This document shows positions 4,289 to 39,452 of a DNA stretch of 64,000 bases, one piece after another; within the stretch, counting starts at the first letter, position 1; each line of letters begins with the position of its first letter. The notes under the pieces were generated by a model that was not told the DNA's origin, made no database searches, and worked only from the letters and a program-made list of their open reading frames with translations. The translations under genes were made by a program, and so were the position numbers. The stretch lies in sequence record NC_005083.2; one strand, written 5' to 3'.

Positions 4289-4582
4289 ATGAGAGAAGCA
4301 ATTGCATTATTAAGCAACACGAGAATGGGATATACTGACATTAGCGCATTTGGCGATCCAGTATTATATGTTCATGCGGGACATGAGACGGTATTAAAAG
4401 TGCAATACACTGAAGATTGCTACTCATTTTACGACTACAGAAGCAAGTATCTTTATACAGAGCAGTCCATCGACGACTTAGAGATACATTTGAAATCAAT
4501 AGATGTCGGGTTAGACGATGATCTACCGTTAAATGGGAACATCGACAAAGACACGATACCAGACGGGGAATTTTTAGAATGA
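4289..4582 (+). CDS. Hypothetical protein, 97 aa, acidic C-terminus
   Basis: ORF, ATGA-coupled to next gene. Confidence 0.7.
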   Translation: MREAIALLSNTRMGYTDISAFGDPVLYVHAGHETVLKVQYTEDCYSFYDYRSKYLYTEQSIDDLEIHLKSIDVGLDDDLPLNGNIDKDTIPDGEFLE

Positions 4583-5499
4583 AGTTTAGTGAATATCAAA
4601 GAATAAACGAATCTCTGGATCGCCCTGCCAATTATAAACTGGTTAGAGAACTCCCAAACTTAAACGTGTATGCGTTTCAAGTTGATGGTGTTTATTATGA
4701 AATAGACATTCAGAAATCAAACATACGAGAGCCTAATGGGATGCAGTCAATGAAAGCTGAAGTCTCATTCAAAGCACTCGACGGTAGTGGTTATCAACTA
4801 ACCAAAAAAGACGATAAAACGGCACGAATTGTACTATCAACCGTAGTTGATGCTATCTTCAGCTTCGTACGCGAATACAATCCTGCTCAAATATTATATT
4901 CTGCATTCAACGATGCTGATCCGTCAGATGCGGCTAAACGACTTCGTTTATATCAGATCATGACTAAAGCAAAACTGCGTGAATTCCCCGAATATGATTT
5001 CCGAAACGTTGGGCGTGATTTCATCGTATACGATGTCAATTACCAAAAACGAGTCGAGGAATTTTCAAGAAGAGCACGTAGACCAGTGGGATATGAAGAA
5101 AGATCAGACCACGTTGAAGTGAATTTATCACATGCCAACGCCTTTGCGTTTATACGAGCGTTTGGGGTAAATGAAGGCGACTCGAAGAGCGGCGTACTAG
5201 GTAAAGGTCGAGCTTTCGTAGGAGCAACAAACGAAATTAAAGCACGTCTGAGAGTAGATCGTGTGGTGTATGAAATGTCTGACAGAGAAGGGTGGCTTGC
5301 GGCTCTTCAGCACCCTATTTTTGACTATGGCGAGGGTCCTGAAGTTGATCGAACATATCTAGTCGGGGCATTTAAAAACTTCTATATCGTGTTGACTAGT
5401 CAAACAAGTCTAAAAATATACACCGATGATGCTGCGTTTACAAAATATGTGAATGCTTTCGACGCGCCATGGTTAAACCCAGAAATAATGGAATCTTAA
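4579..5499 (+). CDS. Hypothetical 306 aa protein, paralog of 5502..6353; candidate internal head protein
   Basis: N-terminus MKFSEYQRINES; shared motif YSAFNDADPSDAAKRLRLY. Confidence 0.8.
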   Translation: MKFSEYQRINESLDRPANYKLVRELPNLNVYAFQVDGVYYEIDIQKSNIREPNGMQSMKAEVSFKALDGSGYQLTKKDDKTARIVLSTVVDAIFSFVREYNPAQILYSAFNDADPSDAAKRLRLYQIMTKAKLREFPEYDFRNVGRDFIVYDVNYQKRVEEFSRRARRPVGYEERSDHVEVNLSHANAFAFIRAFGVNEGDSKSGVLGKGRAFVGATNEIKARLRVDRVVYEMSDREGWLAALQHPIFDYGEGPEVDRTYLVGAFKNFYIVLTSQTSLKIYTDDAAFTKYVNAFDAPWLNPEIMES

Positions 5500-5501
5500 A
5501 A

Positions 5502-6353
5502 ATGAAATTTAGCGAATATCAAAACGAGCTAACGGAAGCATTTGATCGACCTGCACAGATCACAGCACGTCGTGGCAATCAGAGTTTTTTCATGATTGGT
5601 GACACTGAGTACATGGTCGGGTTGTATTACGACGACTCGAAAAAATCACTCGGAGTTGACTTCATGCATAAGCCAGGTGATTCAGCAACGTACCACTACA
5701 GCTTAGCCAAAGGCAACTCAAAAGACGCCATGACTGTTTTTGCAACCGTGATTGCAGAAATCAAGCGACTTATGAACGACAAACCGGTCAATCGAATCAG
5801 CTTCAGTGCGTTTCAAGACTCTGACAGTTCAGATGCTAAAAAGCGTTTTCGATTGTACAAGCGCATGGCAGAACGCTTCAGCAAAGAACTCGGGTTCAGA
5901 ATGACCACTTATGGTGATTCTTTCGTATTGACACGTGTAAACCCTGTTGCAGTCAACGTAGAAGAACCAACTGGTTATGATACAGCGTGGGGTACTGAAA
6001 TGCTCGATCTGCGTGAAGTCAACGACGCTGCAATTGCCAAAGTCACAGAAGGTGATGGTGAATGGCGTTTGAATAACTGGAACAAGCTGATTGTTCGCAA
6101 CGGAAAAGTAACGCTAACATCGGGTCCAATTCGAATGTCAGACGCTTGGTACGATGCGTTTTACGACTTAGAATGGTATCACGATGAAGAAGGCGAACAA
6201 TGGTTCGATGATGAACAGAAGATCGCGATCATCAATGGTAAAGTTTGGGTCGTCAATGACATGGAAATTACTATTTGGCCAAGTATTGAGAAATTAGAAT
6301 TGCAAAGTGACTCGGAATTATCAAGCGGGACACGTCAATTGCTTGGATATTAA
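5502..6353 (+). CDS. Hypothetical 283 aa protein, paralog of 4579..5499; candidate internal head protein
   Basis: N-terminus MKFSEYQNELTEA (start moved from 5469); motif FSAFQDSDSSDAKKRFRLY. Confidence 0.8.
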   Translation: MKFSEYQNELTEAFDRPAQITARRGNQSFFMIGDTEYMVGLYYDDSKKSLGVDFMHKPGDSATYHYSLAKGNSKDAMTVFATVIAEIKRLMNDKPVNRISFSAFQDSDSSDAKKRFRLYKRMAERFSKELGFRMTTYGDSFVLTRVNPVAVNVEEPTGYDTAWGTEMLDLREVNDAAIAKVTEGDGEWRLNNWNKLIVRNGKVTLTSGPIRMSDAWYDAFYDLEWYHDEEGEQWFDDEQKIAIINGKVWVVNDMEITIWPSIEKLELQSDSELSSGTRQLLGY

Positions 6354-6357
6354 TCAG

Positions 6358-6382
6358 AAAGGTAGCTTCGGCTACCTTTTTT
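6358..6382 (+). terminator. Rho-independent terminator with UUCG loop
   Basis: aaaggtagc-ttcg-gctacc-tttttt. Confidence 0.9.
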
Positions 6383-6403
6383 CGTTTTCAGAGCAAAAAA
6401 CGG

Positions 6404-6447
6404 TTGCATGAAATGCTCAAAACCCCTATTATAGCTTCATCGAAACG
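6404..6447 (+). promoter_or_regulatory. Early-type promoter cassette
   Basis: TTGCAT 6404-6409, 17 bp, TATTAT 6427-6432, ATCGAAACG 6439-6447. Confidence 0.8.
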
Positions 6448-6462
6448 AAAGAGGAAAACGAA

Positions 6463-6762
6463 ATGGATGTAACATCAAAACTTGAATTGTCGATGAAAGA
6501 ATTCGTTGACGTTCCATACAACGAGCACAAAACTCATTCTCTTGTTGGTCAAGCAAGTGAGCACATTAACTCGTACTACAATAATCCGGGTGAAATCGTG
6601 ACTTCAAACGTCATGTACGTTGAAATCAACGGTGGTATTGTGTATGCTGTAACGCACTCTAAGAGTCGCTACCAGCTAACCAATGTGTCTCATGATGAGA
6701 TTGCACAAATGGTTAAAGCCGCAAGCGAACGCGGGATTAATATTCCGCTTTACAAAAACTAG
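6463..6762 (+). CDS. Hypothetical protein, 99 aa
   Basis: GAGG RBS behind promoter. Confidence 0.85.
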   Translation: MDVTSKLELSMKEFVDVPYNEHKTHSLVGQASEHINSYYNNPGEIVTSNVMYVEINGGIVYAVTHSKSRYQLTNVSHDEIAQMVKAASERGINIPLYKN

Positions 6763-6822
6763 AAAAATTGCTTTAATACAAACTGATTCACTACTTTTGA
6801 TTACTTTTGAGAGAAATATATT

Positions 6823-7137
6823 ATGACTACTATCGTAAACTTCACTGCTGCAATCGAACTAACTACTAAAGCTCTTGTTGAAACTAACCGTATCGAGGGT
6901 CGTTTCTACAACTCACGCATCGGTCACGAGCAAGGTGAGCAAGCGAAAACTGACGCAGTTCGAGCGTTCAAAGTAATCGACAACAAAGTATATGCTGAAA
7001 CTCGCAACTGCGTGTTCCATCTTCGCAATCTGTCTGCTCTTGCCCTAGCTGACTTCAATACTATCAACGCACCAGTGTACATGAAGAAAGCCGATGCTGA
7101 GTTCGACGAAATGGTTAAATCAGCCCTGTTCTCGTAA
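6823..7137 (+). CDS. Hypothetical protein, 104 aa
   Basis: GAGAGA RBS; coupled to cd. Confidence 0.85.
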   Translation: MTTIVNFTAAIELTTKALVETNRIEGRFYNSRIGHEQGEQAKTDAVRAFKVIDNKVYAETRNCVFHLRNLSALALADFNTINAPVYMKKADAEFDEMVKSALFS

Positions 7138-7589
7138 TGTACCCGAAGAATAAAAGCTATTATGACTTGGTGTATCTTGACATCGCCAAGTCATTTGCTA
7201 AGAAAAGCACCTGCAAACAGAAGCAAGTAGGTGCTGTCATCGTCAAGAATGATCGCATTATCTCACACGGTTACAATGGTACGCCGTCAGGCATGCTTCA
7301 CTGTAAAGATACCGCTGACTTCGGTGATCTAACTCACCGTCAATGGTCAGAAATTCACGAGATTCATGCTGAACAAAACGCGATTTGCTACGCTGCACGC
7401 GCTGGCATATCTACTGAAGGCGCGACTATGTACGTCACAGCGTCGCCGTGTCATAACTGTGCCAAGCTGATAGTCGCGGCTGGTATCAAAATTCTCATTG
7501 TAGGTTCGATTTACAGCGGTTCGCAACCCGATTGGTGGCACTGGCTACGTGATCGCGGTGTGAAAGTTATTATGTTCGAAGACGAATAA
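7137..7589 (+). CDS. cd: dCMP deaminase
   Basis: VGAVIVK..IISHGYNGTPSG, HAEQNAI and PCHNC Zn-deaminase motifs. Confidence 0.95.
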   Translation: MYPKNKSYYDLVYLDIAKSFAKKSTCKQKQVGAVIVKNDRIISHGYNGTPSGMLHCKDTADFGDLTHRQWSEIHEIHAEQNAICYAARAGISTEGATMYVTASPCHNCAKLIVAAGIKILIVGSIYSGSQPDWWHWLRDRGVKVIMFEDE

Positions 7590-7643: not shown

Positions 7644-8570
7644 ATGAAAAGTACAATGTTTTTGAACAACATCACATGCATCGACCATGCATGGGTTGAT
7701 GATATGGGTGAAATGAATGGTAATAGCTACAATCTATGTGTAGAAATTACCGGTGAAGTTGACGAGACTGAACAAGTTGTTATTGATTTCAGTGGTTGTA
7801 AGAAAGCAATCAAACATCTTGTGGATGATTCTGAATTCGCCATTGATCATCGTCTAGTCGTCGTTGACGGGTTTAGTGATGCAGTTCTTTCTCAAGTCGA
7901 AGATCGACTACGCATTCAAATCGACACGCCGGTCTTTCATGCAGTGTCCACGGTTGACGACTGGTATCAAGTCATCAAGCCGAGCGAATTGATTGAAGCC
8001 GACTTTAAAATCCCTAGCGATTCTCTGTACATGTCGTATGTTACTGAGTATCTTGAAGATATGCTGCTTGAACAGCTACGCAAGCAAGGTTATCCCGTTA
8101 CACACGTCGCTGTAGAGCTTTCAGAGTCGTTTGACTTACCATCATGGGCAAACAGTCACGTTGAATTCAATTACGCTCACGGACTGCGTTCAAGCACATC
8201 ATACGGATGTCAGAACATTGCACACGGTCATCGTTCATTCATTGCAGTAGATCAGCATTTGAACAGTAACGGTCGCAAGGTGCTGAAGCGCATTGCTAAA
8301 GAAATGAGCGGTTATATTGCTTGGTCAGAAAACATTCGCAAAGAAGATGAAGTGTCTTACACTTCAAAACGCGGCAACTTCTACTTGAGACACAGCAATA
8401 TCAAAGTAATCCCGACGGAAACTACAGTCGAAAATCTAGCCAATTACATTGCAACTACATACGAAGAAGAGTTCCAACGAATGGGAGTTCAGCGTGTGTG
8501 GGTATCTGAGGGTCTATCAAAAGGCTCGGTTGTAGACATCAAAATCAACAAAGAATTGCTCTATAAGTAA
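7644..8570 (+). CDS. queD: QueD-like 6-carboxytetrahydropterin synthase (double length, two T-fold halves)
   Basis: HGLRSSTSYGCQNIAHGH and TTVENLA motifs in C-terminal half; VIDF..CKKAIKHLVD...IDHR in N-terminal half; adjacent to folE. Confidence 0.8.
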   Translation: MKSTMFLNNITCIDHAWVDDMGEMNGNSYNLCVEITGEVDETEQVVIDFSGCKKAIKHLVDDSEFAIDHRLVVVDGFSDAVLSQVEDRLRIQIDTPVFHAVSTVDDWYQVIKPSELIEADFKIPSDSLYMSYVTEYLEDMLLEQLRKQGYPVTHVAVELSESFDLPSWANSHVEFNYAHGLRSSTSYGCQNIAHGHRSFIAVDQHLNSNGRKVLKRIAKEMSGYIAWSENIRKEDEVSYTSKRGNFYLRHSNIKVIPTETTVENLANYIATTYEEEFQRMGVQRVWVSEGLSKGSVVDIKINKELLYK

Positions 8571-8587
8571 TCAACAAATTAATGTTT

Positions 8588-8611
8588 AGTAGCACGTCTC
8601 GGCGTGCTATT
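8588..8611 (+). other. Intercistronic hairpin (possible terminator or processing site)
   Basis: agtagcacg-tctcgg-cgtgctatt between queD and folE. Confidence 0.6.
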
Positions 8612-8638
8612 ATTGTTTTCTATCAATGAGGAAATAGA

Positions 8639-9310: not shown

Positions 9311-10687
9311 ATGATAATTGAATACGTTATGTCTGCGACGGGTCATGCTCGTCTCGGCGCAGCACATAAGCTAATGGACGTGGTTGACACGTCCTATTTG
9401 CGCGACATTTTAAATGCAGCGCAAGATCTCGACGGCGTTCACAAAATCAGTATGCTGTACAATGCATATACTGAAAAGAAAGTCGGTCATCAAATCAATG
9501 ACTTGTTCGGTGATTCTGTATACAAGGTACACGTCGATTCGGGTGGTCTACAGATAGTCAACTTGGGTTTAGAGAACACGCCCGAACTTCGCAAAGCAGT
9601 ATACGAGAATCAAGCAGAATCTGGTGATATTGGCATGTGTTTTGACGAAATCCCATTGCACAACGAAGCAAAGGGTGGTGGCGCTGCTCGTATCAACACG
9701 AAAGACAAGGTCTTCATGTATGATCTAGCGTACAAGTACGGCGTCAAAACAGGTAAGAACATTCGCGCACAAATCGAAACTTATATCGAGAAGGGTAGCA
9801 AATGCAAACCGTATATCATCTTACAAGGCAACTCAGACGACGACTTTAAAGCATTCAGTGACGGGATTATGTCTCAACTCGAAGGCGTTGAAGATCACAT
9901 TGCTGGTTGTGCTGCTGCCGATACATGCATTGGTAATGGCGTACGTGAGTCTATCGACATGATGAGCGTCATTCCGAAACTCAACATCCCAGAGAAAGCA
10001 AAGAAATCAGTGCATATGCTGGGAGTTGGCTCAGTTAAACGTCTATTGCCTGCTGTAGCACTTATCAGAAGTGGTTATTTTGGTGATGACTTTCATATCA
10101 GCTATGACTCATCAACGCATACTGGATGTCTGACTAACCGAGAATACACAGACAAGCTTGGTCGCCGTCGTAAAATCTCAGGTCACGGAATTATGAAAGA
10201 TGGTAAGAAATTGCCTTCTCGTGAGCTTGATGAAATGCTAGATGAAGTGTGGGGTCGATTCGGTCATACTCTACCGCGTAGCAAAGAAGAGTTCAAGGAA
10301 TTCGCGACACGTCTGTGGTTGAAAGAACTCGACAAAGAAACAATGACTGACGAAGATATTGTGTTTGAAGTTGCTTGCAACTTGTGTATAATCTTATCAC
10401 AAGTCAACAACTTTCAAGCGATTATCTCTGAAACGTTTGACTTGAATACGCCAAAAGCTGCTGATTTGTCAGCGTTCTTCGGTGGTTCTATTGAGAAAAA
10501 AGAGCCGCAAGAGGGATTCAAGAAGTGGTCAGCGATTCGTCGTCTTGATGTTCTTGATAAACTACTTGACGTTAAAACTATCGAAGCATATGATCGCTGG
10601 CACAGTAGCTATGTTGATAGACTACCGTCAATGCGCATTCGTCGCGGCACAACTGCTGAATTCCCAGCTTTCAAAGAACAAGAATAG
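9311..10687 (+). CDS. dpdA: TGT-fold 7-deazaguanine transglycosylase, DpdA-like (DNA-targeting inferred)
   Basis: HVDSGGLQ, CFDEIP, ILQG, HMLGVGS, SYDSS motifs; inside the queD-folE-queF-queC cluster; no CxCxxC Zn site typical of bacterial tRNA TGT. Confidence 0.75.
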   Translation: MIIEYVMSATGHARLGAAHKLMDVVDTSYLRDILNAAQDLDGVHKISMLYNAYTEKKVGHQINDLFGDSVYKVHVDSGGLQIVNLGLENTPELRKAVYENQAESGDIGMCFDEIPLHNEAKGGGAARINTKDKVFMYDLAYKYGVKTGKNIRAQIETYIEKGSKCKPYIILQGNSDDDFKAFSDGIMSQLEGVEDHIAGCAAADTCIGNGVRESIDMMSVIPKLNIPEKAKKSVHMLGVGSVKRLLPAVALIRSGYFGDDFHISYDSSTHTGCLTNREYTDKLGRRRKISGHGIMKDGKKLPSRELDEMLDEVWGRFGHTLPRSKEEFKEFATRLWLKELDKETMTDEDIVFEVACNLCIILSQVNNFQAIISETFDLNTPKAADLSAFFGGSIEKKEPQEGFKKWSAIRRLDVLDKLLDVKTIEAYDRWHSSYVDRLPSMRIRRGTTAEFPAFKEQE

Positions 10688-19826: not shown

Positions 19827-21896
19827 ATGATTATCCATACCCCTGATAGCACAGTACAAACATCTGGCAAGATGCGCACTGCTGGATTTAATATGAAAGC
19901 AAGCGCAAAAGGCTTTCGTATTATCTCGACTACACTATACAAAGACCCGATTCTAGCCATTGTACGCGAATTGACGTGTAATGGTTGGGATGCGCATCAA
20001 ATGAACAAAAATCTCGATACTCCGATTCAAGTACATTTACCGAATCAGTTCGAGCCGTGGTTTAGTGTGAAAGACTTCGGTTGTGGCATGAGCGACGATG
20101 AAATCTTTGGTGTGTACACGACTGTGTTTGATTCAACGAAAGATGACTCAAACGACGTGATTGGTGCAATGGGTCTAGGTTCAAAAACGCCATTCAGCTA
20201 CAACAACGGTCAGTCGTTCACTGTTAAGTCAACGAAGAATGGTCTGAAAGCTGTTTACTCGGCGTATCTAGACAAAGGTGAACCTGCAATCACATGTATG
20301 TCAGAGCCTGCGCCGACTGATGAACCAGACGGTGTTGAAGTCATCGTGCCAGTGCGTAAAGAAGACTTCAGTCGCTTTAAAGAAGCTGCAAATCAAGTAA
20401 TGCCGTACTTTAAAGCACCTGCTGTTGAGACGAACATCACGCTTTCTGAGCGTAAATTCACTCACATGGACGGGTATTTCACTGAAAACAAGAAGAATTC
20501 ATGGCGTTCTGGTGATGTATATGCAGTAATGGGCAACGTTTGTTATCCGTTGAGCGAAAGTCACATCAAAGACATTCAGCTTGTGCGTAATTACTTCAAG
20601 AACTCTGATCTATTCATTGAGTTTCCGATTGGTGAGCTAGATGTAAGTGCGTCTCGTGAAGAGCTTCACTATGACGATTACACAATTGAAAACATCAACA
20701 AGCGTGTGAACTTAATCAACACGAAGTTCCTCGATGAAGCACAGAAATGGGTTGATGACCAGAAATTCTCGCACATCGGTGATGCGTACCGCGCTTGTGA
20801 CAATCGCTTCAATGATGTTGTAATGAAGAAGCTGACATTTAATGGCGTGTCTGTAATGACTTACTCGCAAAATATGCTGAAAGATTTTGCGATTCTAGGT
20901 AAAGTTGTTCAACTTCGCCCTGAATACAGCAACAAAGAAGGTGTTCAGCGTCGTACTAACTTTGCTCGTCCGTATGATCTTGTGAACCCTCGCAATGAAT
21001 ACGCGAAAAGTCCAATTCATATTATTGTCGATGATATGAAATCAGGTGGTGTTGCTATCGCGAAAGAATACGTTCGTGAAGAAGGTCAAGTGGTGTTTTA
21101 TCATCACGATGATAAGCCGTCAACGACTGCTGCACTTGCATTCTTTAAAGAACGACTACGTGATTGCGAATACAAAGTCCTGAAGACTTCTGAACTGAAA
21201 GCTAACTACACGCCACAGAAGAAGACTGTCAAGAAAAAACCAGTCTCACCGACTATTCGCTTGTATGAAATGCGAATCAATGAAGACGGTGTTCGTACAG
21301 TTCAAGCGTCTGACGTGAAGCGCGAAGTGCTGAAGAACGACGAACTGTATTACGTGAGTTTGTTCCGCGATTACATTGAGAAAACGCCAGAGTGTGGTCA
21401 TGGTCTAGATTACCATCGTTCTCTTGGAATGATCGAAGAGATTATGCGTATCAAAGGTCTTGATGTTGTGTACATTGCACGACGTCCAGAGTACGTACAC
21501 ATCAAAGACAATAAAAACGCTGTGAATATCTTCGATATTAAGTTTAACAAGCGTGAGTTGCGTAGTAAAATTGACTGGAAATCATACACAGTTGATAACA
21601 ATCTGTACGGCTATCGCAGTTCGCTAGAGAACACATGGGCTAACACTGCTGTTCGTGACCATTTCGGTTACTCGCAGTCTCGTAATACGTGCTGCCAGAC
21701 GATTGATCGTCTATGTGATAACTTCCCTGCTGTTCGTGAAATTCGCAAAGCAGAGCAAGAAAAGCACTTGGAAAAGTTACAAACTATCCAAACTGCTCCG
21801 AAATACAAGTTGCTGTTTGATTTGGTAAGTTCAAACACCAACACTGAATCAACGCAAAAACTAATTAAACTCTTGAGAGGAAAACGCAATGGTTAA
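19827..21896 (+). CDS. rIIA: rIIA membrane-associated protector protein
   Basis: N-terminal GHKL-like module (LYKDPILAIVRELTCNGWDA, DFGCGMS, GAMGLGSKTPFSY); precedes rIIB; start moved from 19776. Confidence 0.93.
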   Translation: MIIHTPDSTVQTSGKMRTAGFNMKASAKGFRIISTTLYKDPILAIVRELTCNGWDAHQMNKNLDTPIQVHLPNQFEPWFSVKDFGCGMSDDEIFGVYTTVFDSTKDDSNDVIGAMGLGSKTPFSYNNGQSFTVKSTKNGLKAVYSAYLDKGEPAITCMSEPAPTDEPDGVEVIVPVRKEDFSRFKEAANQVMPYFKAPAVETNITLSERKFTHMDGYFTENKKNSWRSGDVYAVMGNVCYPLSESHIKDIQLVRNYFKNSDLFIEFPIGELDVSASREELHYDDYTIENINKRVNLINTKFLDEAQKWVDDQKFSHIGDAYRACDNRFNDVVMKKLTFNGVSVMTYSQNMLKDFAILGKVVQLRPEYSNKEGVQRRTNFARPYDLVNPRNEYAKSPIHIIVDDMKSGGVAIAKEYVREEGQVVFYHHDDKPSTTAALAFFKERLRDCEYKVLKTSELKANYTPQKKTVKKKPVSPTIRLYEMRINEDGVRTVQASDVKREVLKNDELYYVSLFRDYIEKTPECGHGLDYHRSLGMIEEIMRIKGLDVVYIARRPEYVHIKDNKNAVNIFDIKFNKRELRSKIDWKSYTVDNNLYGYRSSLENTWANTAVRDHFGYSQSRNTCCQTIDRLCDNFPAVREIRKAEQEKHLEKLQTIQTAPKYKLLFDLVSSNTNTESTQKLIKLLRGKRNG

Positions 21897-33566: not shown

Positions 33567-33842
33567 ATGAACATCAATCTGCTTATTCGCAATGAAGTGA
33601 AGAACAACACGAGTCGTTACGCTACTGCATACGACATCATGGACGATATGCTTGAGAAGTTCCCTCAAGCGCGTGCCTCTGCTGCGAAAAACGATGGAAC
33701 AATGAAGAACAGCACACTGCGACGTGAAATCGCTCGTGCTCTTGATAACTCAAGCAACTGGAAAGCAATCGGCAAGACCGAGACTGGTCGTAAACTATAC
33801 GAACGCTTACCTAATGGCAATTCACTGGAGAACTTTGTATGA
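33567..33842 (+). CDS. Hypothetical protein, 91 aa
   Basis: GAGG RBS; start moved from 33555. Confidence 0.8.
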   Translation: MNINLLIRNEVKNNTSRYATAYDIMDDMLEKFPQARASAAKNDGTMKNSTLRREIARALDNSSNWKAIGKTETGRKLYERLPNGNSLENFV

Positions 33843-34465
33843 ACGCATATGACTTAGTAAGAAAAATGCAAAAGGTTGTTAACTCTTGCGAGACAATTGA
33901 ACAACTACGTAATGCAAGAAAGTATCTCATGCGCTGTCAAGACTATGCACTAGATGGTGGCAATGACAATTACATCACTACTATCATGGTAGAAGTTGAT
34001 GACTTAGATGAACGCATTACCAATAAGATCGTTGAGTTGTCTGATACTCGTGGCATGAACGCTATCGAAACTGGCATTATCAAAGTCGGCATTGATATTC
34101 ATGGAGTCATTGACCAATCACCAGAGTTCTTCGCGCTGTTAAGCAAACTACCAGTTGAAGTGCATATCATCACTGGCATTAAAGAAGAACTCGACACTGA
34201 TGTACCAGATGACTTAGAGTACGATCACTGGTTCTCGATCCATCAAGAGTGTGAAGATCGCGGCGTTGAAATCAAATACGACGAGAAAGGGCGCCCATGG
34301 GTCGATGATGAAATCTGGAACAACATGAAAGCTGAATACTGCCAAGAGAACAACATCAATATCATGATCGATGACTCACCAACGTATGCTAAAACATTCG
34401 AAGGTCTTGATACTTTCTATCTACAACTAACCAATACTGTTCGTGATGAATGGAGACGCAAATGA
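33839..34465 (+). CDS. Protein with C-terminal HAD-like domain
   Basis: VGIDIHGVID, HIITG, K...C, IMIDDSP. Confidence 0.7.
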   Translation: MNAYDLVRKMQKVVNSCETIEQLRNARKYLMRCQDYALDGGNDNYITTIMVEVDDLDERITNKIVELSDTRGMNAIETGIIKVGIDIHGVIDQSPEFFALLSKLPVEVHIITGIKEELDTDVPDDLEYDHWFSIHQECEDRGVEIKYDEKGRPWVDDEIWNNMKAEYCQENNINIMIDDSPTYAKTFEGLDTFYLQLTNTVRDEWRRK

Positions 34466-34647
34466 AATCATTCGGAATTATAGACCGTGAAGGCAGACAT
34501 CTACTTGAACTCGATGTTGACAATGAACTAAAAGTCATGGCAATCTTCTCTGAAATTGAAGATGCTCATCGTGTGCTGTACAAATTTGGCTTTGATAAGC
34601 AAGGCTTTCGCGTAATCGAACTAAAACCACTTGAGAAGAAAGTATGA
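34462..34647 (+). CDS. Hypothetical protein, 61 aa
   Basis: Coupled ORF. Confidence 0.75.
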   Translation: MKSFGIIDREGRHLLELDVDNELKVMAIFSEIEDAHRVLYKFGFDKQGFRVIELKPLEKKV

Positions 34648-34853
34648 ATGTAGCAAATGTAATGTCACAACACGCATCAATCCAATATGCGCTGATTGAA
34701 TATCTCAATGCACAATACGACGGCGAAGGTCATATCGAATATGCTGAATACTTCGAAGACATTCAAGCGTGGGAAGTTCAATACTATGATGGTGAGTTCT
34801 TACATGAGCTAACCGTTACTGCACAAGCAATTGAGACATGGATGAACAAATGA
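34644..34853 (+). CDS. Small acidic protein, paralog family A member 1
   Basis: Coupled ORF; pattern shared with the next two genes. Confidence 0.8.
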   Translation: MNVANVMSQHASIQYALIEYLNAQYDGEGHIEYAEYFEDIQAWEVQYYDGEFLHELTVTAQAIETWMNK

Positions 34854-35056
34854 TTGACCAAACAATGTCAGACTACAGTCGCATCATGAATGCAATCGAA
34901 GAATATTTGGACTTACGTTCTTATCAATACACTGATGTCATTCAATATGATAAAGAACGTAAAGGCTTTGATGTCGCGATTGTTGAAGAAACTGAAAACG
35001 GATCCGAATACCTAGATGTATTCGTGCCAAACGAAAGGCTAGAAACATTCCTATGA
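34850..35056 (+). CDS. Small acidic protein, paralog family A member 2
   Basis: Coupled ORF. Confidence 0.8.
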   Translation: MIDQTMSDYSRIMNAIEEYLDLRSYQYTDVIQYDKERKGFDVAIVEETENGSEYLDVFVPNERLETFL

Positions 35057-35286
35057 ATATAAACGATGTAATGATCTCACACGAGCAAATCATGAAGTCA
35101 TTGCATCGTGTCATAGAAAGTCGCACTGATAATCGCATTGTCGAAATCACTTACGATAAAGACAAAATGTATTTCATTGTGACTCTAAGCTCATCCGATG
35201 CCGTTGCTGATGAAATCTATCAATGGAACTGCGTAGTCACCAACGAAACAATAGTCAATCAAATGCACATGGAGAAGTTCAGATGA
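35053..35286 (+). CDS. Small protein, paralog family A member 3
   Basis: Coupled ORF. Confidence 0.8.
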   Translation: MNINDVMISHEQIMKSLHRVIESRTDNRIVEITYDKDKMYFIVTLSSSDAVADEIYQWNCVVTNETIVNQMHMEKFR

Positions 35287-35456
35287 AACTACCAGAATAC
35301 TTGAGCCACGTTACTGTAAAAGAAAACGTAATCATAATCGACTCAGCGCGAGATAAAGCGTTGGTCGTCGATTATCTAACCAATATCAAAGCACGATTCC
35401 ATATCGTCCAAAAGACGATTAGCCGCTGCGAAATCCACGTGAAGAGAACATCATGA
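35283..35456 (+). CDS. Hypothetical protein, 57 aa
   Basis: GGAG RBS, ATGA overlaps. Confidence 0.7.
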   Translation: MKLPEYLSHVTVKENVIIIDSARDKALVVDYLTNIKARFHIVQKTISRCEIHVKRTS

Positions 35457-35782
35457 AAGAACTACTGAACACACTGAATCAAGTTGAAACTCAAATCGCT
35501 AAACAGTTCGGTCTCGACCATCTATGGCACGGACTAGTAGACTGCACTAATAGCGTATTCGCTGCCGATAACGATGATCTACTAAAAGCACGTGAATTCC
35601 AATACGCTGATACAGAGAAAGCAATCACAGAAGGCGACTGCTATGGCATTGAAGTATACGGCACAAGCGTATGGCTATCAACTGATGGCAAATACGTATT
35701 GACTGTAGCTGATGACGGCTGTGGCAATCGAGACTTCTATATCTTTGATGCGTCTAAACACTCAGATTGCGAAATGTACTAA
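35453..35782 (+). CDS. Hypothetical acidic protein, 109 aa
   Basis: Coupled ORF. Confidence 0.8.
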   Translation: MKELLNTLNQVETQIAKQFGLDHLWHGLVDCTNSVFAADNDDLLKAREFQYADTEKAITEGDCYGIEVYGTSVWLSTDGKYVLTVADDGCGNRDFYIFDASKHSDCEMY

Positions 35783-35793
35783 AAAGTAATAAA

Positions 35794-35829
35794 AAAGGGT
35801 TGACAGATGTCAGCCCTTTCGCGTATTAT
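35794..35829 (+). promoter_or_regulatory. PeSL-like promoter/terminator cassette
   Basis: aaagggTTGAC-agat-gtcagcccttt; TATTAT 35824-35829. Confidence 0.85.
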
Positions 35830-35859
35830 ACACATATCAAATCAAGAAAGGAAAACATT

Positions 35860-36051
35860 ATGTTCATCGTAACTATGCTAGGCGCAGTAATGTTCATCAT
35901 TCTATTACTCGTGCTCGTAAACGAAATGCGCCCATTCATGACAGAAGAAAACAAAACAATGTCATTGACGTTCGGCGTAGCTATCAGCTTAATCAATCTG
36001 TTCTTTATTACAAAGTACGCAAGTCTATTCCAATTACTACTAGAGAAATAA
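35860..36051 (+). CDS. Small membrane protein, 63 aa
   Basis: Two TM; start moved from 35767. Confidence 0.75.
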   Translation: MFIVTMLGAVMFIILLLVLVNEMRPFMTEENKTMSLTFGVAISLINLFFITKYASLFQLLLEK

Positions 36052-36054
36052 ATC

Positions 36055-36210
36055 ATGTCACTAACAGCTATGCTTCTGATATTACTATGCTGTGCAATAC
36101 TAACTGGCATTAGTGTATTCAGCTTCATCAACAAACCAGGAATTTTTAGCTTACTGTTCTCATTCGTATTCGGCACTGTCTCTTATGTTATGCTAATGGC
36201 TATCGTATGA
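36055..36210 (+). CDS. Small membrane protein, 51 aa (hand-called)
   Basis: Almost entirely hydrophobic; GAGA RBS; ATGA overlap. Confidence 0.65.
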   Translation: MSLTAMLLILLCCAILTGISVFSFINKPGIFSLLFSFVFGTVSYVMLMAIV

Positions 36211-36542
36211 GCGCAATGCTAATGATGAAAATCGGTGTATCTCTAATGATATTCGGCATCGCGCTACTCGTGCTCGGCAATATCACTATATGGTATCTTA
36301 AACGTAGAGAGAAAACTATGAACCAAACAACTCAATCAATCCGCGCTATCTGTGTTGACAATCAATCAACTCGTATCGACAAACCAGAACCACCTACTGG
36401 CTTAACAGAAGGCAAAGAGTATGTCGTTCACATGTATAACGTAAACGAACATATCAATAAACCACCTATGATTCGTATCACTAACGATCTAGGTCAACGC
36501 GCAAGCTATGTCGCTTCTCGATTCAATCTAATAGTAGGATAA
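36207..36542 (+). CDS. Membrane-anchored protein, 111 aa
   Basis: N-terminal TM; a second in-frame start at MNQTTQ is possible. Confidence 0.7.
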   Translation: MSAMLMMKIGVSLMIFGIALLVLGNITIWYLKRREKTMNQTTQSIRAICVDNQSTRIDKPEPPTGLTEGKEYVVHMYNVNEHINKPPMIRITNDLGQRASYVASRFNLIVG

Positions 36543-36545
36543 CTC

Positions 36546-36713
36546 ATGTTTGTACTATCACTCTTAATGCTTATTCTCGTTGTATATCTGTTTGTAACCG
36601 ATAAAACAAACCGCACAATTCCTTTCATGATACTGCTAATAGCAACTGCGTTTAACTCTATCATACACTATTACCTCATGGATATTCTCTCATTGAGCGT
36701 TAGTCTATCGTAA
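36546..36713 (+). CDS. Small membrane protein, 55 aa (hand-called)
   Basis: AGGA RBS; two hydrophobic segments. Confidence 0.65.
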   Translation: MFVLSLLMLILVVYLFVTDKTNRTIPFMILLIATAFNSIIHYYLMDILSLSVSLS

Positions 36714-37110
36714 TAGCTTCTATCAGATAATACCTAAAAACCGCTTAGAATGCGATTCAGAGCGTGTCAGAGCATGGTACAGATACAATGCTTTTTAATA
36801 TATCGCACCATGCCTCGTTAAAATCATCCTGGTAAGGAAAACCGTGTAAAAAGCCAGTTGGTCAGATACGGTAAGTTACTGAAAAAACTTCGGAAATACA
36901 CGATTTTAAGCAGTTGAAAGACTATGCTGCAACACGTGTGTAATATAGTGAAAAAATCGGTGAACCCTCATCGGCTCCTGTGTAGTAAAATGCAGTTGCG
37001 GATGGTACTCGCCTTATGAAAATCTAAATCGCTTCGCATCTTTCCGCTTGACAGCCAATGCCATTCTGTGAGAGAATGAGAAGAGATTTGAACCGCCGAC
37101 GGAGGTAATT
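36714..37110. other. Largest non-coding gap; candidate replication origin
   Basis: About 400 bp with no credible ORF; AAC-rich to GTT-rich inversion across it; A tracts; GCATGGT/ACCATGC inverted repeat. Confidence 0.45.
37048..37077 (+). promoter_or_regulatory. sigma70-type promoter
   Basis: TTGACA, 18 bp, TGn-GAGAAT. Confidence 0.55.
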
Positions 37111-37257
37111 GTGATTACATTGGCGTTATTTTATATGAGTCGCGACATGCAATACAGTGAGCGACCAAGTGACTTGTATCTCGGTACATGTATTTTAGAC
37201 TTTGCATTAATCATTACGTTGTTCTGTGGTGTAATGATGTTCACGGGGAATTGGTAA
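37111..37257 (+). CDS. Small membrane protein, 48 aa (hand-called, GTG start)
   Basis: GGAGGT RBS; TAATG coupling to next gene. Confidence 0.65.
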   Translation: MITLALFYMSRDMQYSERPSDLYLGTCILDFALIITLFCGVMMFTGNW

Positions 37258-37565
37258 TGAGACGATTTAAACTTGGTAATCTCTTACGCGGTGGCTTTGC
37301 TGGTGATTTTGAGACGATAGAAGAAGCATGGGAGAAGCTTGGTTCACGCTTTCTACTGTCATTTCCGTGTGATGCATGGTCAAAAGAGCGTGGTGTTTAC
37401 ATCAATGAAGACGGCGGTCGGCATGTTTACATGTATGTAAAAGAAGAGAACAAGTATGGTCATCTTGATTGGGCTATGTGTAAAGGTGATGTGTTTTATA
37501 TGAAAGACCGTGTGACGGTTACTGCTGACGATTATGAATACTGTCGTGATGCTGAATTTTTCTAA
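37257..37565 (+). CDS. Hypothetical protein, 102 aa
   Basis: Start moved from 37188. Confidence 0.75.
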   Translation: MRRFKLGNLLRGGFAGDFETIEEAWEKLGSRFLLSFPCDAWSKERGVYINEDGGRHVYMYVKEENKYGHLDWAMCKGDVFYMKDRVTVTADDYEYCRDAEFF

Positions 37566-37574
37566 GGGTTAAAG

Positions 37575-38180
37575 ATGAAAAGAGTTGAGTTACACAAGAA
37601 AGTGGTAGACAAGCAAGCTGTTCTTCCAGATCATTCTCATGTGCAAGTTGAGACGTATTACCACACGTACAAGGGTTACATGAATTATCTAACTGGTTTG
37701 CGTGGTGTAGATGGTGATCAGTATCTGCTTGTTACAGATGATGGTCGTTTTGTTCGAGTAGAAGAGAAGCATCTAAACGGTCAAGAGCAGAAACAGCGCA
37801 AGATCAGTGGTGGTTTAATTGATGTACGAGCGCGTTTGCAACTGCCAGCGAAAGATTGGGATTGGTATGACTGTATCTGGCGTAATGGTAAGATTGTTTA
37901 CAAGTACCGCGAGACAGATTTCGTTACTGAAGAACACGAGTTAGTGGTTGGTGAGATAGTAGACATTTACGAGTCTAACGACTTTAATGGTGATTATCCG
38001 CATGATGCTACAGTGGTGTTATCTAGACCGAAGCAAATGGTACTTGAAGCATATGGTAAACTAGTAGTGTTTACAGTGCCGAAAGAGCCATGTGGTGATA
38101 GTTTAGTCTCTGATTGTGGTGATTATCGTATTGCTGGTAATTACGCCGCGAGTGAATACGACGAAGAACTGCATTCGTAA
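37575..38180 (+). CDS. Hypothetical protein, 201 aa
   Basis: AAGGG RBS, ORF. Confidence 0.85.
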   Translation: MKRVELHKKVVDKQAVLPDHSHVQVETYYHTYKGYMNYLTGLRGVDGDQYLLVTDDGRFVRVEEKHLNGQEQKQRKISGGLIDVRARLQLPAKDWDWYDCIWRNGKIVYKYRETDFVTEEHELVVGEIVDIYESNDFNGDYPHDATVVLSRPKQMVLEAYGKLVVFTVPKEPCGDSLVSDCGDYRIAGNYAASEYDEELHS

Positions 38181-38186
38181 TTGAAG

Positions 38187-38238
38187 AAAAGGGTTGACGC
38201 TTGTCAGCCCTTTCTTGTATTATCTCTATATCGAAACG
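38187..38238 (+). promoter_or_regulatory. PeSL-like promoter/terminator cassette
   Basis: gggTTGAC-gctt-gtcagccc-tttctt; TATTAT 38218-38223; ATCGAAACG. Confidence 0.85.
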
Positions 38239-38263
38239 ACATCGACTAACTAGAGAGAAAATT

Positions 38264-38620
38264 ATGTTTAACGCTACTACTGTTCTGAATCAACTAACTG
38301 CTTCAAACCATGGTCATTCACGTCTTGTTGCCATGACTGGTGCTAAGAATATCATGCAATCTGTAGAAAATCGTTTTGTTTCTTTCAAGTTGCCGAAAGC
38401 AGTACGTGGTATTAACTACGTGAAAATCACTCTGACTGACGCTGATTTGTATGATATTGAGTTTGGTAAGCAATCTAGCAAAGCTTGTCCAGACATGAAA
38501 GCAATTGGTATTAAAGTGATGATGCCGCATTACGCTCAGAAGAAAGTCGTAAATGGTGTATACAACGACATGCTAAAAGAGATTTTCGAGCAAGAAACTG
38601 GTCTTTATTTGTCACTTTAA
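38264..38620 (+). CDS. Hypothetical early protein, 118 aa
   Basis: Start moved from 38201. Confidence 0.85.
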   Translation: MFNATTVLNQLTASNHGHSRLVAMTGAKNIMQSVENRFVSFKLPKAVRGINYVKITLTDADLYDIEFGKQSSKACPDMKAIGIKVMMPHYAQKKVVNGVYNDMLKEIFEQETGLYLSL

Positions 38621-38623
38621 GCA

Positions 38624-38675
38624 AAAAGTGGTTGCATGGTGTAGCCACTTACTGTATTATCTCTATATCGAAACG
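38624..38675 (+). promoter_or_regulatory. PeSL-like promoter cassette
   Basis: agtggTTGC-atggt-gtagccact; TATTAT 38655-38660; ATCGAAACG. Confidence 0.85.
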
Positions 38676-39400: not shown

Positions 39401-39452
39401 AAAAGTGGTTGCGTGCTGTAGCCACTTTCTGTATTATCTCTATATCGAAACG
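39401..39452 (+). promoter_or_regulatory. PeSL-like promoter cassette (near-copy of 38624)
   Basis: agtggTTGC-gtgct-gtagccact; TATTAT 39432-39437; ATCGAAACG. Confidence 0.85.

Follow-up and report, generated by a model that had tools for sequence, protein, structure and literature searches.

A conserved non-coding gap at the sharpest strand-composition flip of the Vibrio phage KVP40 genome: a candidate promoter-type replication origin

Genomic context and anatomy of the locus

The locus considered here is a non-coding gap of about 400 bp, at positions 36714-37110 of a 64,000-nucleotide stretch (hereafter the window) that corresponds at 100% identity to positions 62001-126000 of the genome of Vibrio phage KVP40 (NC_005083.2). 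KVP40 is a Schizotequatrovirus and a relative of T4; its whole genome of 244,834 bp, assembled from five record pieces, served as the background. Coordinates are positions in the window unless given as KVP40 genome, and those in relatives refer to the records of D491s (L011), VS1 (L009), QD01 (L012), phi-pp2 (L143) and phi-Grn1 (L144). The gap lies within a long rightward-transcribed early region between natV and tk, packed with small function-unknown genes. An earlier note on this DNA had observed that the base composition of the + strand is inverted across the gap, although the genes on both sides are on the + strand, and had proposed a bidirectional origin of replication whose flanking codons are enriched for sites of a T4-type primase.

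The annotated genes flanking the gap are indeed all on the + strand. To the left stand four small, mostly hydrophobic genes with an excess of C over G (35860-36051, 36055-36210, 36207-36542 and 36546-36713), whose GC skew ranges from -0.13 to -0.30 per gene, with a codon-choice residual of -0.09 to -0.14. To the right, the G-rich unit opens with an unannotated open reading frame (ORF) of 48 amino acids (37111-37257, + strand) that has a GTG start with GGAGG 5 nt upstream and a hydrophobic C-terminus. This ORF matches PHROG 16778 (E 8e-33), is 83-96% identical in amino-acid sequence in relatives and 50% in D491s, and has a codon-choice residual GC skew of +0.22 (z 3.7). It is followed by KVP40.0173 and KVP40.0174 (together 37257-38180, + strand), in which G exceeds C and T exceeds A, with GC skews of +0.32 and +0.28. 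KVP40.0173 is annotated at 37188-37565; judged from the annotation of relatives, its true start is probably 37257, overlapping the stop codon of the 48-aa ORF. Homologues of KVP40.0174 were found only in vibriophages.

The gap itself is conserved as primary sequence, with 75-79% identity in VH7D, ValKK3, phi-ST2, VS1 and QD01. A hidden gene was ruled out, since the ORF list holds none of at least 32 amino acids there. A structured RNA in the gap or in the 5' leader was likewise rejected: the gap has no Rfam match at E<=1, and consensus folds are without covariation. Near the left end, TCAGAGC occurs twice as a direct repeat at 10-bp spacing (36757-36763 and 36767-36773, + strand), as read in the sequence and aligned; the pair is common to all five vibriophage clades compared below and is a triple in D491s. 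A 7-nt inverted repeat, GCATGGT/ACCATGC (36772-36778/36807-36813), encloses a 28-nt A+T-rich spacer. This repeat and the promoter described below had both been pointed out in the earlier note and are present as claimed; in VS1, nt-1 or D491s the repeat is not preserved through compensatory change. The 30-nt segment 36774-36803 has an A+T content of 77%, which places it in the top 0.4% of the window. In the alignments, the most conserved part of the gap is a 16-nt core, CGCACCATGCCTCGTT (36804-36819, + strand), which is invariant in KVP40, VH7D, phi-ST2, VS1 and QD01 and is retained in the roughly 253-kb D491s group. Derivation of the element from a host was rejected, since the core 20-mer is absent from 185,579 bacterial and archaeal genomes.

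Downstream of the core, the alignment shows a divergent middle (36826-36950), the position at which relatives carry arrays of DnaA boxes. Additional conserved blocks separate it from the promoter region (37017-37077, + strand), in which promoter scan and alignment identify a conserved upstream block and a sigma-70-type early promoter. This promoter (37048-37077) reads TTGACA-18-GAGAAT with TG and is nearly invariant in the alignment of clades. A reading of the gap revealed no GATC cluster. Chi sites facing the gap were also considered and rejected, as GCTGGTGG occurs twice in the genome, neither time nearby.

A compositional flip unique in the genome

The composition switches from A+C-rich to G+T-rich at the gap, and the counts behind the original observation are exact: 15 AAC and 2 GTT at 36241-36540, 4 AAC and 12 GTT at 37561-37860. 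In 500-bp windows, the GC skew passes from -0.15/-0.23 at 36001-36750 to +0.25 to +0.32 at 37001-38250, while the AAC/GTT counts per window change from 19-22/4-7 on the left to 3-6/8-17 on the right. In a genome-wide scan of the right flank minus the left flank, the GC-skew step at ~36900 is the largest of all 245 kb at flanks of 300, 500, 700, 1000, 1500 and 2500 bp. With 500-bp flanks it reaches 0.535 (z about 6; runner-up 0.339), and it is larger than the steps at true transcription-strand switches (160.4 and 190 kb). The GTT-AAC step falls within the top 0.02-0.08% genome-wide. Furthermore, in a ranking of some 275 +-strand genes by GC skew, three genes to the left of the gap come 1st, 4th and 6th from the bottom, and the two annotated right-hand genes 1st and 3rd from the top. 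When gene order was permuted 5000 times, the maximum flip between three genes and the next three averaged 0.189 (99th percentile 0.267), and the observed 0.446 was never reached. Similar flips are thus not common elsewhere; by step scan and permutation alike, this one is unique in the genome.

The polarity argument is also geometrically correct. The keto-rich (G+T) strand is the + strand on the right and the - strand on the left, which is the arrangement of diverging forks or displaced strands. The sign change is restricted to about 35750-38200, with about 1 kb on the left and 1.1 kb on the right. GC skew is negative from about 35750; the negative-skew transcription unit starts at a promoter-in-stem-loop repeat (35793-35830, + strand) in which the promoter scan finds TTGACA-18-TATTAT at 35800-35829. 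The positive-skew domain ends at a second promoter-in-stem-loop, a terminator-like hairpin detected by terminator and promoter scans (38188-38223, + strand), and GC skew falls from 0.25 through 0.11 to 0.07 across 38001-38500.

Codon choice and the primase-site question

The contribution of the encoded proteins was assessed by resampling synonymous codons from genome-wide usage with the proteins held fixed. The proteins do differ, those on the left being small and hydrophobic and those on the right rich in Gly, Val, Asp and Trp, and from amino acids together with genome-wide codon usage a flip of about 0.19-0.21 is predicted, which by itself would rank among the five largest of the genome. The remainder, a codon-choice residual of 0.26 (4 standard deviations), exceeds that at every other genuine +-strand boundary. 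The skew therefore does not vanish under codon and amino-acid control; the flip persists, also at synonymous sites. Third codon positions disfavour G and T in the left genes, with A at 0.37-0.61 of four-fold sites and G-ending two-fold codons at 0-0.21, and disfavour C and A in the right genes, with four-fold T at 0.48-0.62 and C at 0.04-0.10. In KVP40.0173 and KVP40.0174, four-fold T is 0.48-0.53 and C 0.05-0.10.

The bias is not specific to primase sites. The GTT-AAC flip of 32 is far from the -0.4 +/- 6.2 expected from protein sequence, and its polarity is as predicted for lagging-strand templates. When trinucleotides are compared, the flips are 40 for TGA/TCA, 36 for GGT/ACC, 34 for GTG/CAC, 34 for GTT/AAC, 31 for TTG/CAA, 30 for GAT/ATC and 29 for TGG/CCA. 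GTT/AAC thus flips no more than six other keto-rich trinucleotides, which indicates a general asymmetry of keto against amino bases (G+T versus A+C), and base composition alone gives 20 of its 34. For GCT/AGC, the second T4 primase site, the flip is -14, opposite to the prediction. With GTT as one of seven similarly flipped trinucleotides and GCT reversed, the proposal that the flanking codons are enriched for priming sites is not supported, nor is a primase-site mechanism.

Conservation and DnaA-box arrays in relatives

The syntenic gap shows the flip in five vibriophage clades, namely those of KVP40, VH7D/phi-ST2, VS1/QD01, nt-1 (genus Mylasvirus) and D491s. In the relatives, the last kilobase before the gap has a GC skew of -0.10 to -0.22, and the 1-2.5 kb after it one of +0.23 to +0.40. 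Homology of the core flanking genes extends across the clades, so that part of this conservation is inheritance. Homologues of KVP40.0174, however, are just 37-61% identical, and synonymous sites have therefore likely turned over many times. In addition, right-hand genes that have no KVP40 counterpart are also strongly G-rich; their GC skews are +0.20 to +0.39, where the genome averages 0.07 (standard deviation 0.08). Examples are found in VH7D (L007, 5534-5857 and 6851-7765), nt-1 (ORF037) and D491s (7696-8624), and their composition argues for a position-dependent effect on the right. IMG/VR held no relatives beyond KVP40 and VH7D, and a 14-mer scan for further relatives returned chance matches only; of two metagenome scans, one was without matches and the other gave 24 chance matches with zero homology.

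In three clades, the divergent middle of the gap carries perfect DnaA boxes in a single orientation (TTATNCACA, or TGTGNATAA on the + strand). The VH7D/ValKK3 clade has seven within about 110 bp in 6/6 genomes, VS1 and QD01 have five each, and nt-1 has four together with near-matches; by chance about 0.3 boxes per 10-kb locus are expected. The boxes start 9, 12, 21 or 23 bp apart, roughly in helical phase. In every clade with boxes, the 30-mer of the gap that is richest in A+T stands immediately 5' of them. This patch is only 30 nt long, has 77-80% A+T and is conserved in four clades on the 5' side of the box position. In Escherichia coli oriC, the unwinding element is on the corresponding side of box R1. 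In the KVP40 gap, no 9-mer lies within 2 mismatches of TGTGGATAA, and the whole KVP40 genome holds 10 copies of TTATNCACA against about 7.5 by chance. In the literature, neither this locus nor any DnaA box in these phages was found described.

Two further observations concern the box position and the boxes themselves. At the position of the relatives' DnaA boxes, D491s has 3.5 tandem copies of a 10-mer, AGCCAAGAAC (about 6262-6297), and its close relative 6E35.1a has about 1.5 copies, so the copy number varies. VS1 and QD01 carry a perfect DnaA-box pair inside coding sequence ~5 kb downstream (10156-10176 and 10366-10386, respectively), which has the 12-bp spacing and linker found in the gap and encodes LVDKSVDKL.

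Ongoing substitution at the flip was followed in 12 genomes, six of the KVP40 clade and six of the VH7D clade, with substitutions polarised. In the right block, derived C>T changes per C are 2.5 times as frequent as G>A changes per G (20/300 vs 15/541, p 0.011), which indicates that the G-rich, C-poor state on the right is being maintained.

A candidate promoter-type origin

Replication origins have been mapped experimentally in T4 alone among its relatives and share no common motif, so that the origins of many T4-related phages are not predictable (PMC3016281). Origin calls for phi-ST2 and phi-Grn1 have been published from cumulative skew (PMC5107563); these calls merely trace the direction of transcription. 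For the KVP40 gap, a replication function is plausible on five counts: the flip has the polarity of diverging forks and no equal in the genome, the right-hand bias depends on position, relatives carry DnaA-box arrays, and T4 oriE offers a precedent with its early promoter and repeats. The favoured, though tentative, reading of the gap is that of a conserved cis-acting region with an early promoter that may act as an origin of the T4 promoter/R-loop type, assisted by DnaA in most relatives.

Under such a model, the transcript from the 37048 promoter, G-rich and C-poor, would stay hybridised and displace the + strand over the first unit, from 37084 to about 38190. The retained RNA would prime rightward synthesis, and a delayed leftward fork would then displace the - strand. 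In most relatives, host DnaA bound to the phased box array just upstream could assist opening or helicase loading; the KVP40 clade would have lost its boxes. The G+T-rich + strand on the right would be either a footprint of repeated single-strandedness, through C-to-T changes, or a composition selected because it favours the R-loop.

Several known systems offer partial parallels. T4 oriE depends on an early promoter and carries direct repeats, and oriF and oriG combine a promoter with a downstream unwinding region (PMC3016281). As at oriE, the gap belongs to a phage of the T4 family and has an early sigma-70-type promoter needing no phage factor, short direct repeats nearby and small function-unknown early genes downstream (PMC3016281). 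Unlike oriE, which is an established origin, the gap is a candidate only; it is not syntenic with oriE and has two TCAGAGC repeats instead of a cluster of 12-nt iterons. As at oriF and oriG, downstream of the promoter is a region in which the non-template strand could remain displaced, and the record annotates RNase H, gp59, gp41, gp61 and UvsW, the T4 machinery for R-loop origins. The KVP40 promoter, however, is of the early type and not MotA-dependent (no motA is annotated in the record), and in place of a downstream A+T-rich element there is a 1.1-kb domain of strong GC skew. No report of a comparable GC-skew domain at T4 origins was found in the literature.

Arrays of DnaA boxes are characteristic of bacterial oriC, datA, and plasmid or phage origins such as P1 oriR. 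The relatives resemble these in their 4-7 consensus boxes in one orientation and roughly helical phase, and resemble E. coli oriC in the placement of the A+T-rich patch and in the change of skew sign at the site. They differ in that these are lytic T4-like phages, which have a replisome of their own, bacterial genomes lack the conserved core, KVP40 has no box, the skew change is local and no GATC cluster was seen. At R-loop-prone GC-skewed promoters and ColE1-type RNA-primed origins, G exceeds C on the non-template strand past the promoter. The same strong excess is present directly downstream of the KVP40 gap promoter, although here it lies in protein-coding sequence and extends over about 1.1-2.5 kb, and the R-loop is putative.

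A broader proposal is that KVP40-like vibriophages share a single dominant origin, made of an early promoter and sequence-specific repeats and served by host DnaA in most lineages, that long-lived displaced strands leave a mitochondria-like deamination footprint, and that the KVP40 clade has replaced DnaA dependence. In this full form the proposal is unlikely. If it were true, the footprint would allow the origin to be recognised from its sequence alone, and origins of further T4-related phages might be located by the same sign. If replication starts at this gap, a T4-type replisome would be tied to a host initiator and a local skew would record strand displacement at an origin, making sequence-only origin finding possible. 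Otherwise, the genome's strongest compositional discontinuity would still call for another explanation. The locus is a sharply defined 400-bp candidate, conserved in five vibriophage clades, with a compositional signature and an unexpected connection to host DnaA.

Evidence against the origin and alternative explanations

Several results weigh against an origin. While the DnaA-box arrays of relatives and the conservation of the flip in five clades strengthen the idea put forward in the earlier note, the skew change itself is local. No long-range inversion was found, the 5-kb GC skew being +0.04 on the left and +0.11 on the right; cumulative skew has no extremum here, and the skew of the genome tracks only the direction of transcription. 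The mark of a bidirectional origin, a sign change that persists along each replication arm, is thus absent. T4 origins share no motif, and 2/5 lie outside skew shifts (PMC3016281). Furthermore, the skewed domains end exactly at the transcription-unit borders 35800 and 38188, and likewise in VH7D and D491s, so that a transcription or cassette effect fits as well as an origin does. The KVP40 gap has no iteron array, only the two TCAGAGC copies and no larger repeat family, and no long A+T-rich unwinding element, since 37084-37233 is 60% A+T against a window mean of 57.7%. DnaA boxes are absent from the gap in 6/6 KVP40-clade genomes and in D491s, and DnaA can therefore not be essential. The flanking proteins match function-unknown PHROGs only, with no Pfam match above the cut-off.

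The expected flip of about 0.2 means that protein composition accounts for roughly half of the flip, and the membrane proteins encoded in the left cassette account for about half of the negative skew on that side. Of the polarity argued from composition, ongoing substitutions bear out the right-hand part through the C>T excess; the left block has no reversed bias (23/319 vs 12/228, p 0.38), so the left-hand state is not supported in the same way, and A>G against T>C shows nothing on either side. A soluble gene that phi-pp2 and phi-Grn1 carry to the left of the gap has an ordinary skew (-0.04 and +0.05, respectively), and the left third-position bias fades in nt-1 and D491s; together these make the left side look more like a property of the cassette. 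The origin model leaves the left-hand bias unexplained; to account for it by transcription or an R-loop, a leftward transcript from the gap would be needed. The soluble gene, of 179-181 amino acids, lies directly left of the gap (phi-pp2 6748-7287, phi-Grn1 4457-5002) and is not in KVP40 or VH7D. As phi-pp2 and phi-Grn1 belong to different clades, this distribution suggests a mobile gene inserted at the gap edge.

The main rival gives the gap no role in replication, and it is a possible account of the locus, if a somewhat doubtful one. It takes the gap as a long conserved early regulatory region between two cassettes of opposite composition, with small membrane proteins and A/C-ending codons on the left and Gly/Val/Asp/Trp-rich soluble proteins and G/T-ending codons on the right; the DnaA boxes of relatives would regulate the promoter or act as a sink for host DnaA. 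The flip predicted from amino-acid composition, the coincidence of the skewed domains with transcription units, the homology of the core flanking genes in all clades, the weaker third-position bias and lack of mutational bias on the left, and the dispensability of the boxes in two clades all fit this account. It does not readily accommodate a codon-choice residual of 4 standard deviations, the largest in the genome, a junction of extremes that gene-order permutation never produced, or the G-richness of right-hand genes without a KVP40 counterpart. In addition, the early promoters at 35800 and 38194 have no such skew downstream, and seven phased DnaA boxes exceed what is, to our knowledge, familiar from simple promoter control.

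It is improbable that the gap is instead a hypervariable spot or a place where DNA ends preferentially lie, such as a packaging start, a nick or some other physical discontinuity, with a composition reflecting end processing. Linear GenBank records from three laboratories do break within about 100 bp of the gap promoter: PVA8, PC-Liy1 and PVA23 between 37006 and 37007, R10Z and R11Z between 37036 and 37037, and 6E35.1a with a 55-nt assembler overlap (6364-6418 on the D491s record). Repeats were rejected as the cause of these breaks, because the gap shares no repeat of at least 16 nt with the rest of the genome; authors may, however, have rotated some of the records. PhageTerm called a KVP40-like phage "headful (pac)" with no position given (PMC13373721). 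Public (Logan) contigs, from the only runs that contained the phage, also end within the gap, with about double the depth on its right side, but they are of low depth and unknown library type; an RNA run contained no phage reads. Furthermore, the terminase genes are 117 kb from the gap, and resection from an end in the gap would, by reasoning, expose the strands opposite to those enriched in G+T. Finally, selection for T4-type primase sites (GTT and GCT) on the lagging-strand templates of both sides of an origin is very improbable and, as a specific signal, largely refuted by the comparable flips of other keto-rich trinucleotides and the reversal of GCT, with the proviso that T4 sites were assumed and the recognition site of the KVP40 primase may differ.

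Neighbouring features

Beyond the negative-skew unit lies a far-left block of six small + strand genes (34450-35782) with positive AT skew and A-rich third codon positions. Four-fold sites in this block hold 0.36-0.52 A (genome mean 0.30) and 0.31-0.40 G+T, against 0.57 genome-wide, and its AT skew exceeds the amino-acid expectation (z 5.1). Lys, Glu and Gln codons ending in G are almost absent, and the block differs in this from both the genome average and the block that adjoins the gap. Elsewhere in the KVP40 genome, further long stretches without an annotated gene, at which locus tags are skipped, lie at 79213-79904, 86240-86929, 160988-164368 and 226050-227264.

The two stem-loop promoters that border the skewed domains belong to a dispersed family of elements of roughly 40-60 nt, in which a G+C-rich hairpin of the AAAGGGTTGAC...GTCAGCCCTTT type embeds the -35 element of an early promoter and is followed by TATTAT. 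Besides 35793-35830 and 38188-38223, members in the window lie at 38626-38650 and 39402-39428, and others at 21140, 59685, 85851, 100187, 121370 and 150220 of the KVP40 genome. Public contigs and the V09 record break at such elements, which resemble the "promoter early stem-loop" cassettes of other T4-type phages.

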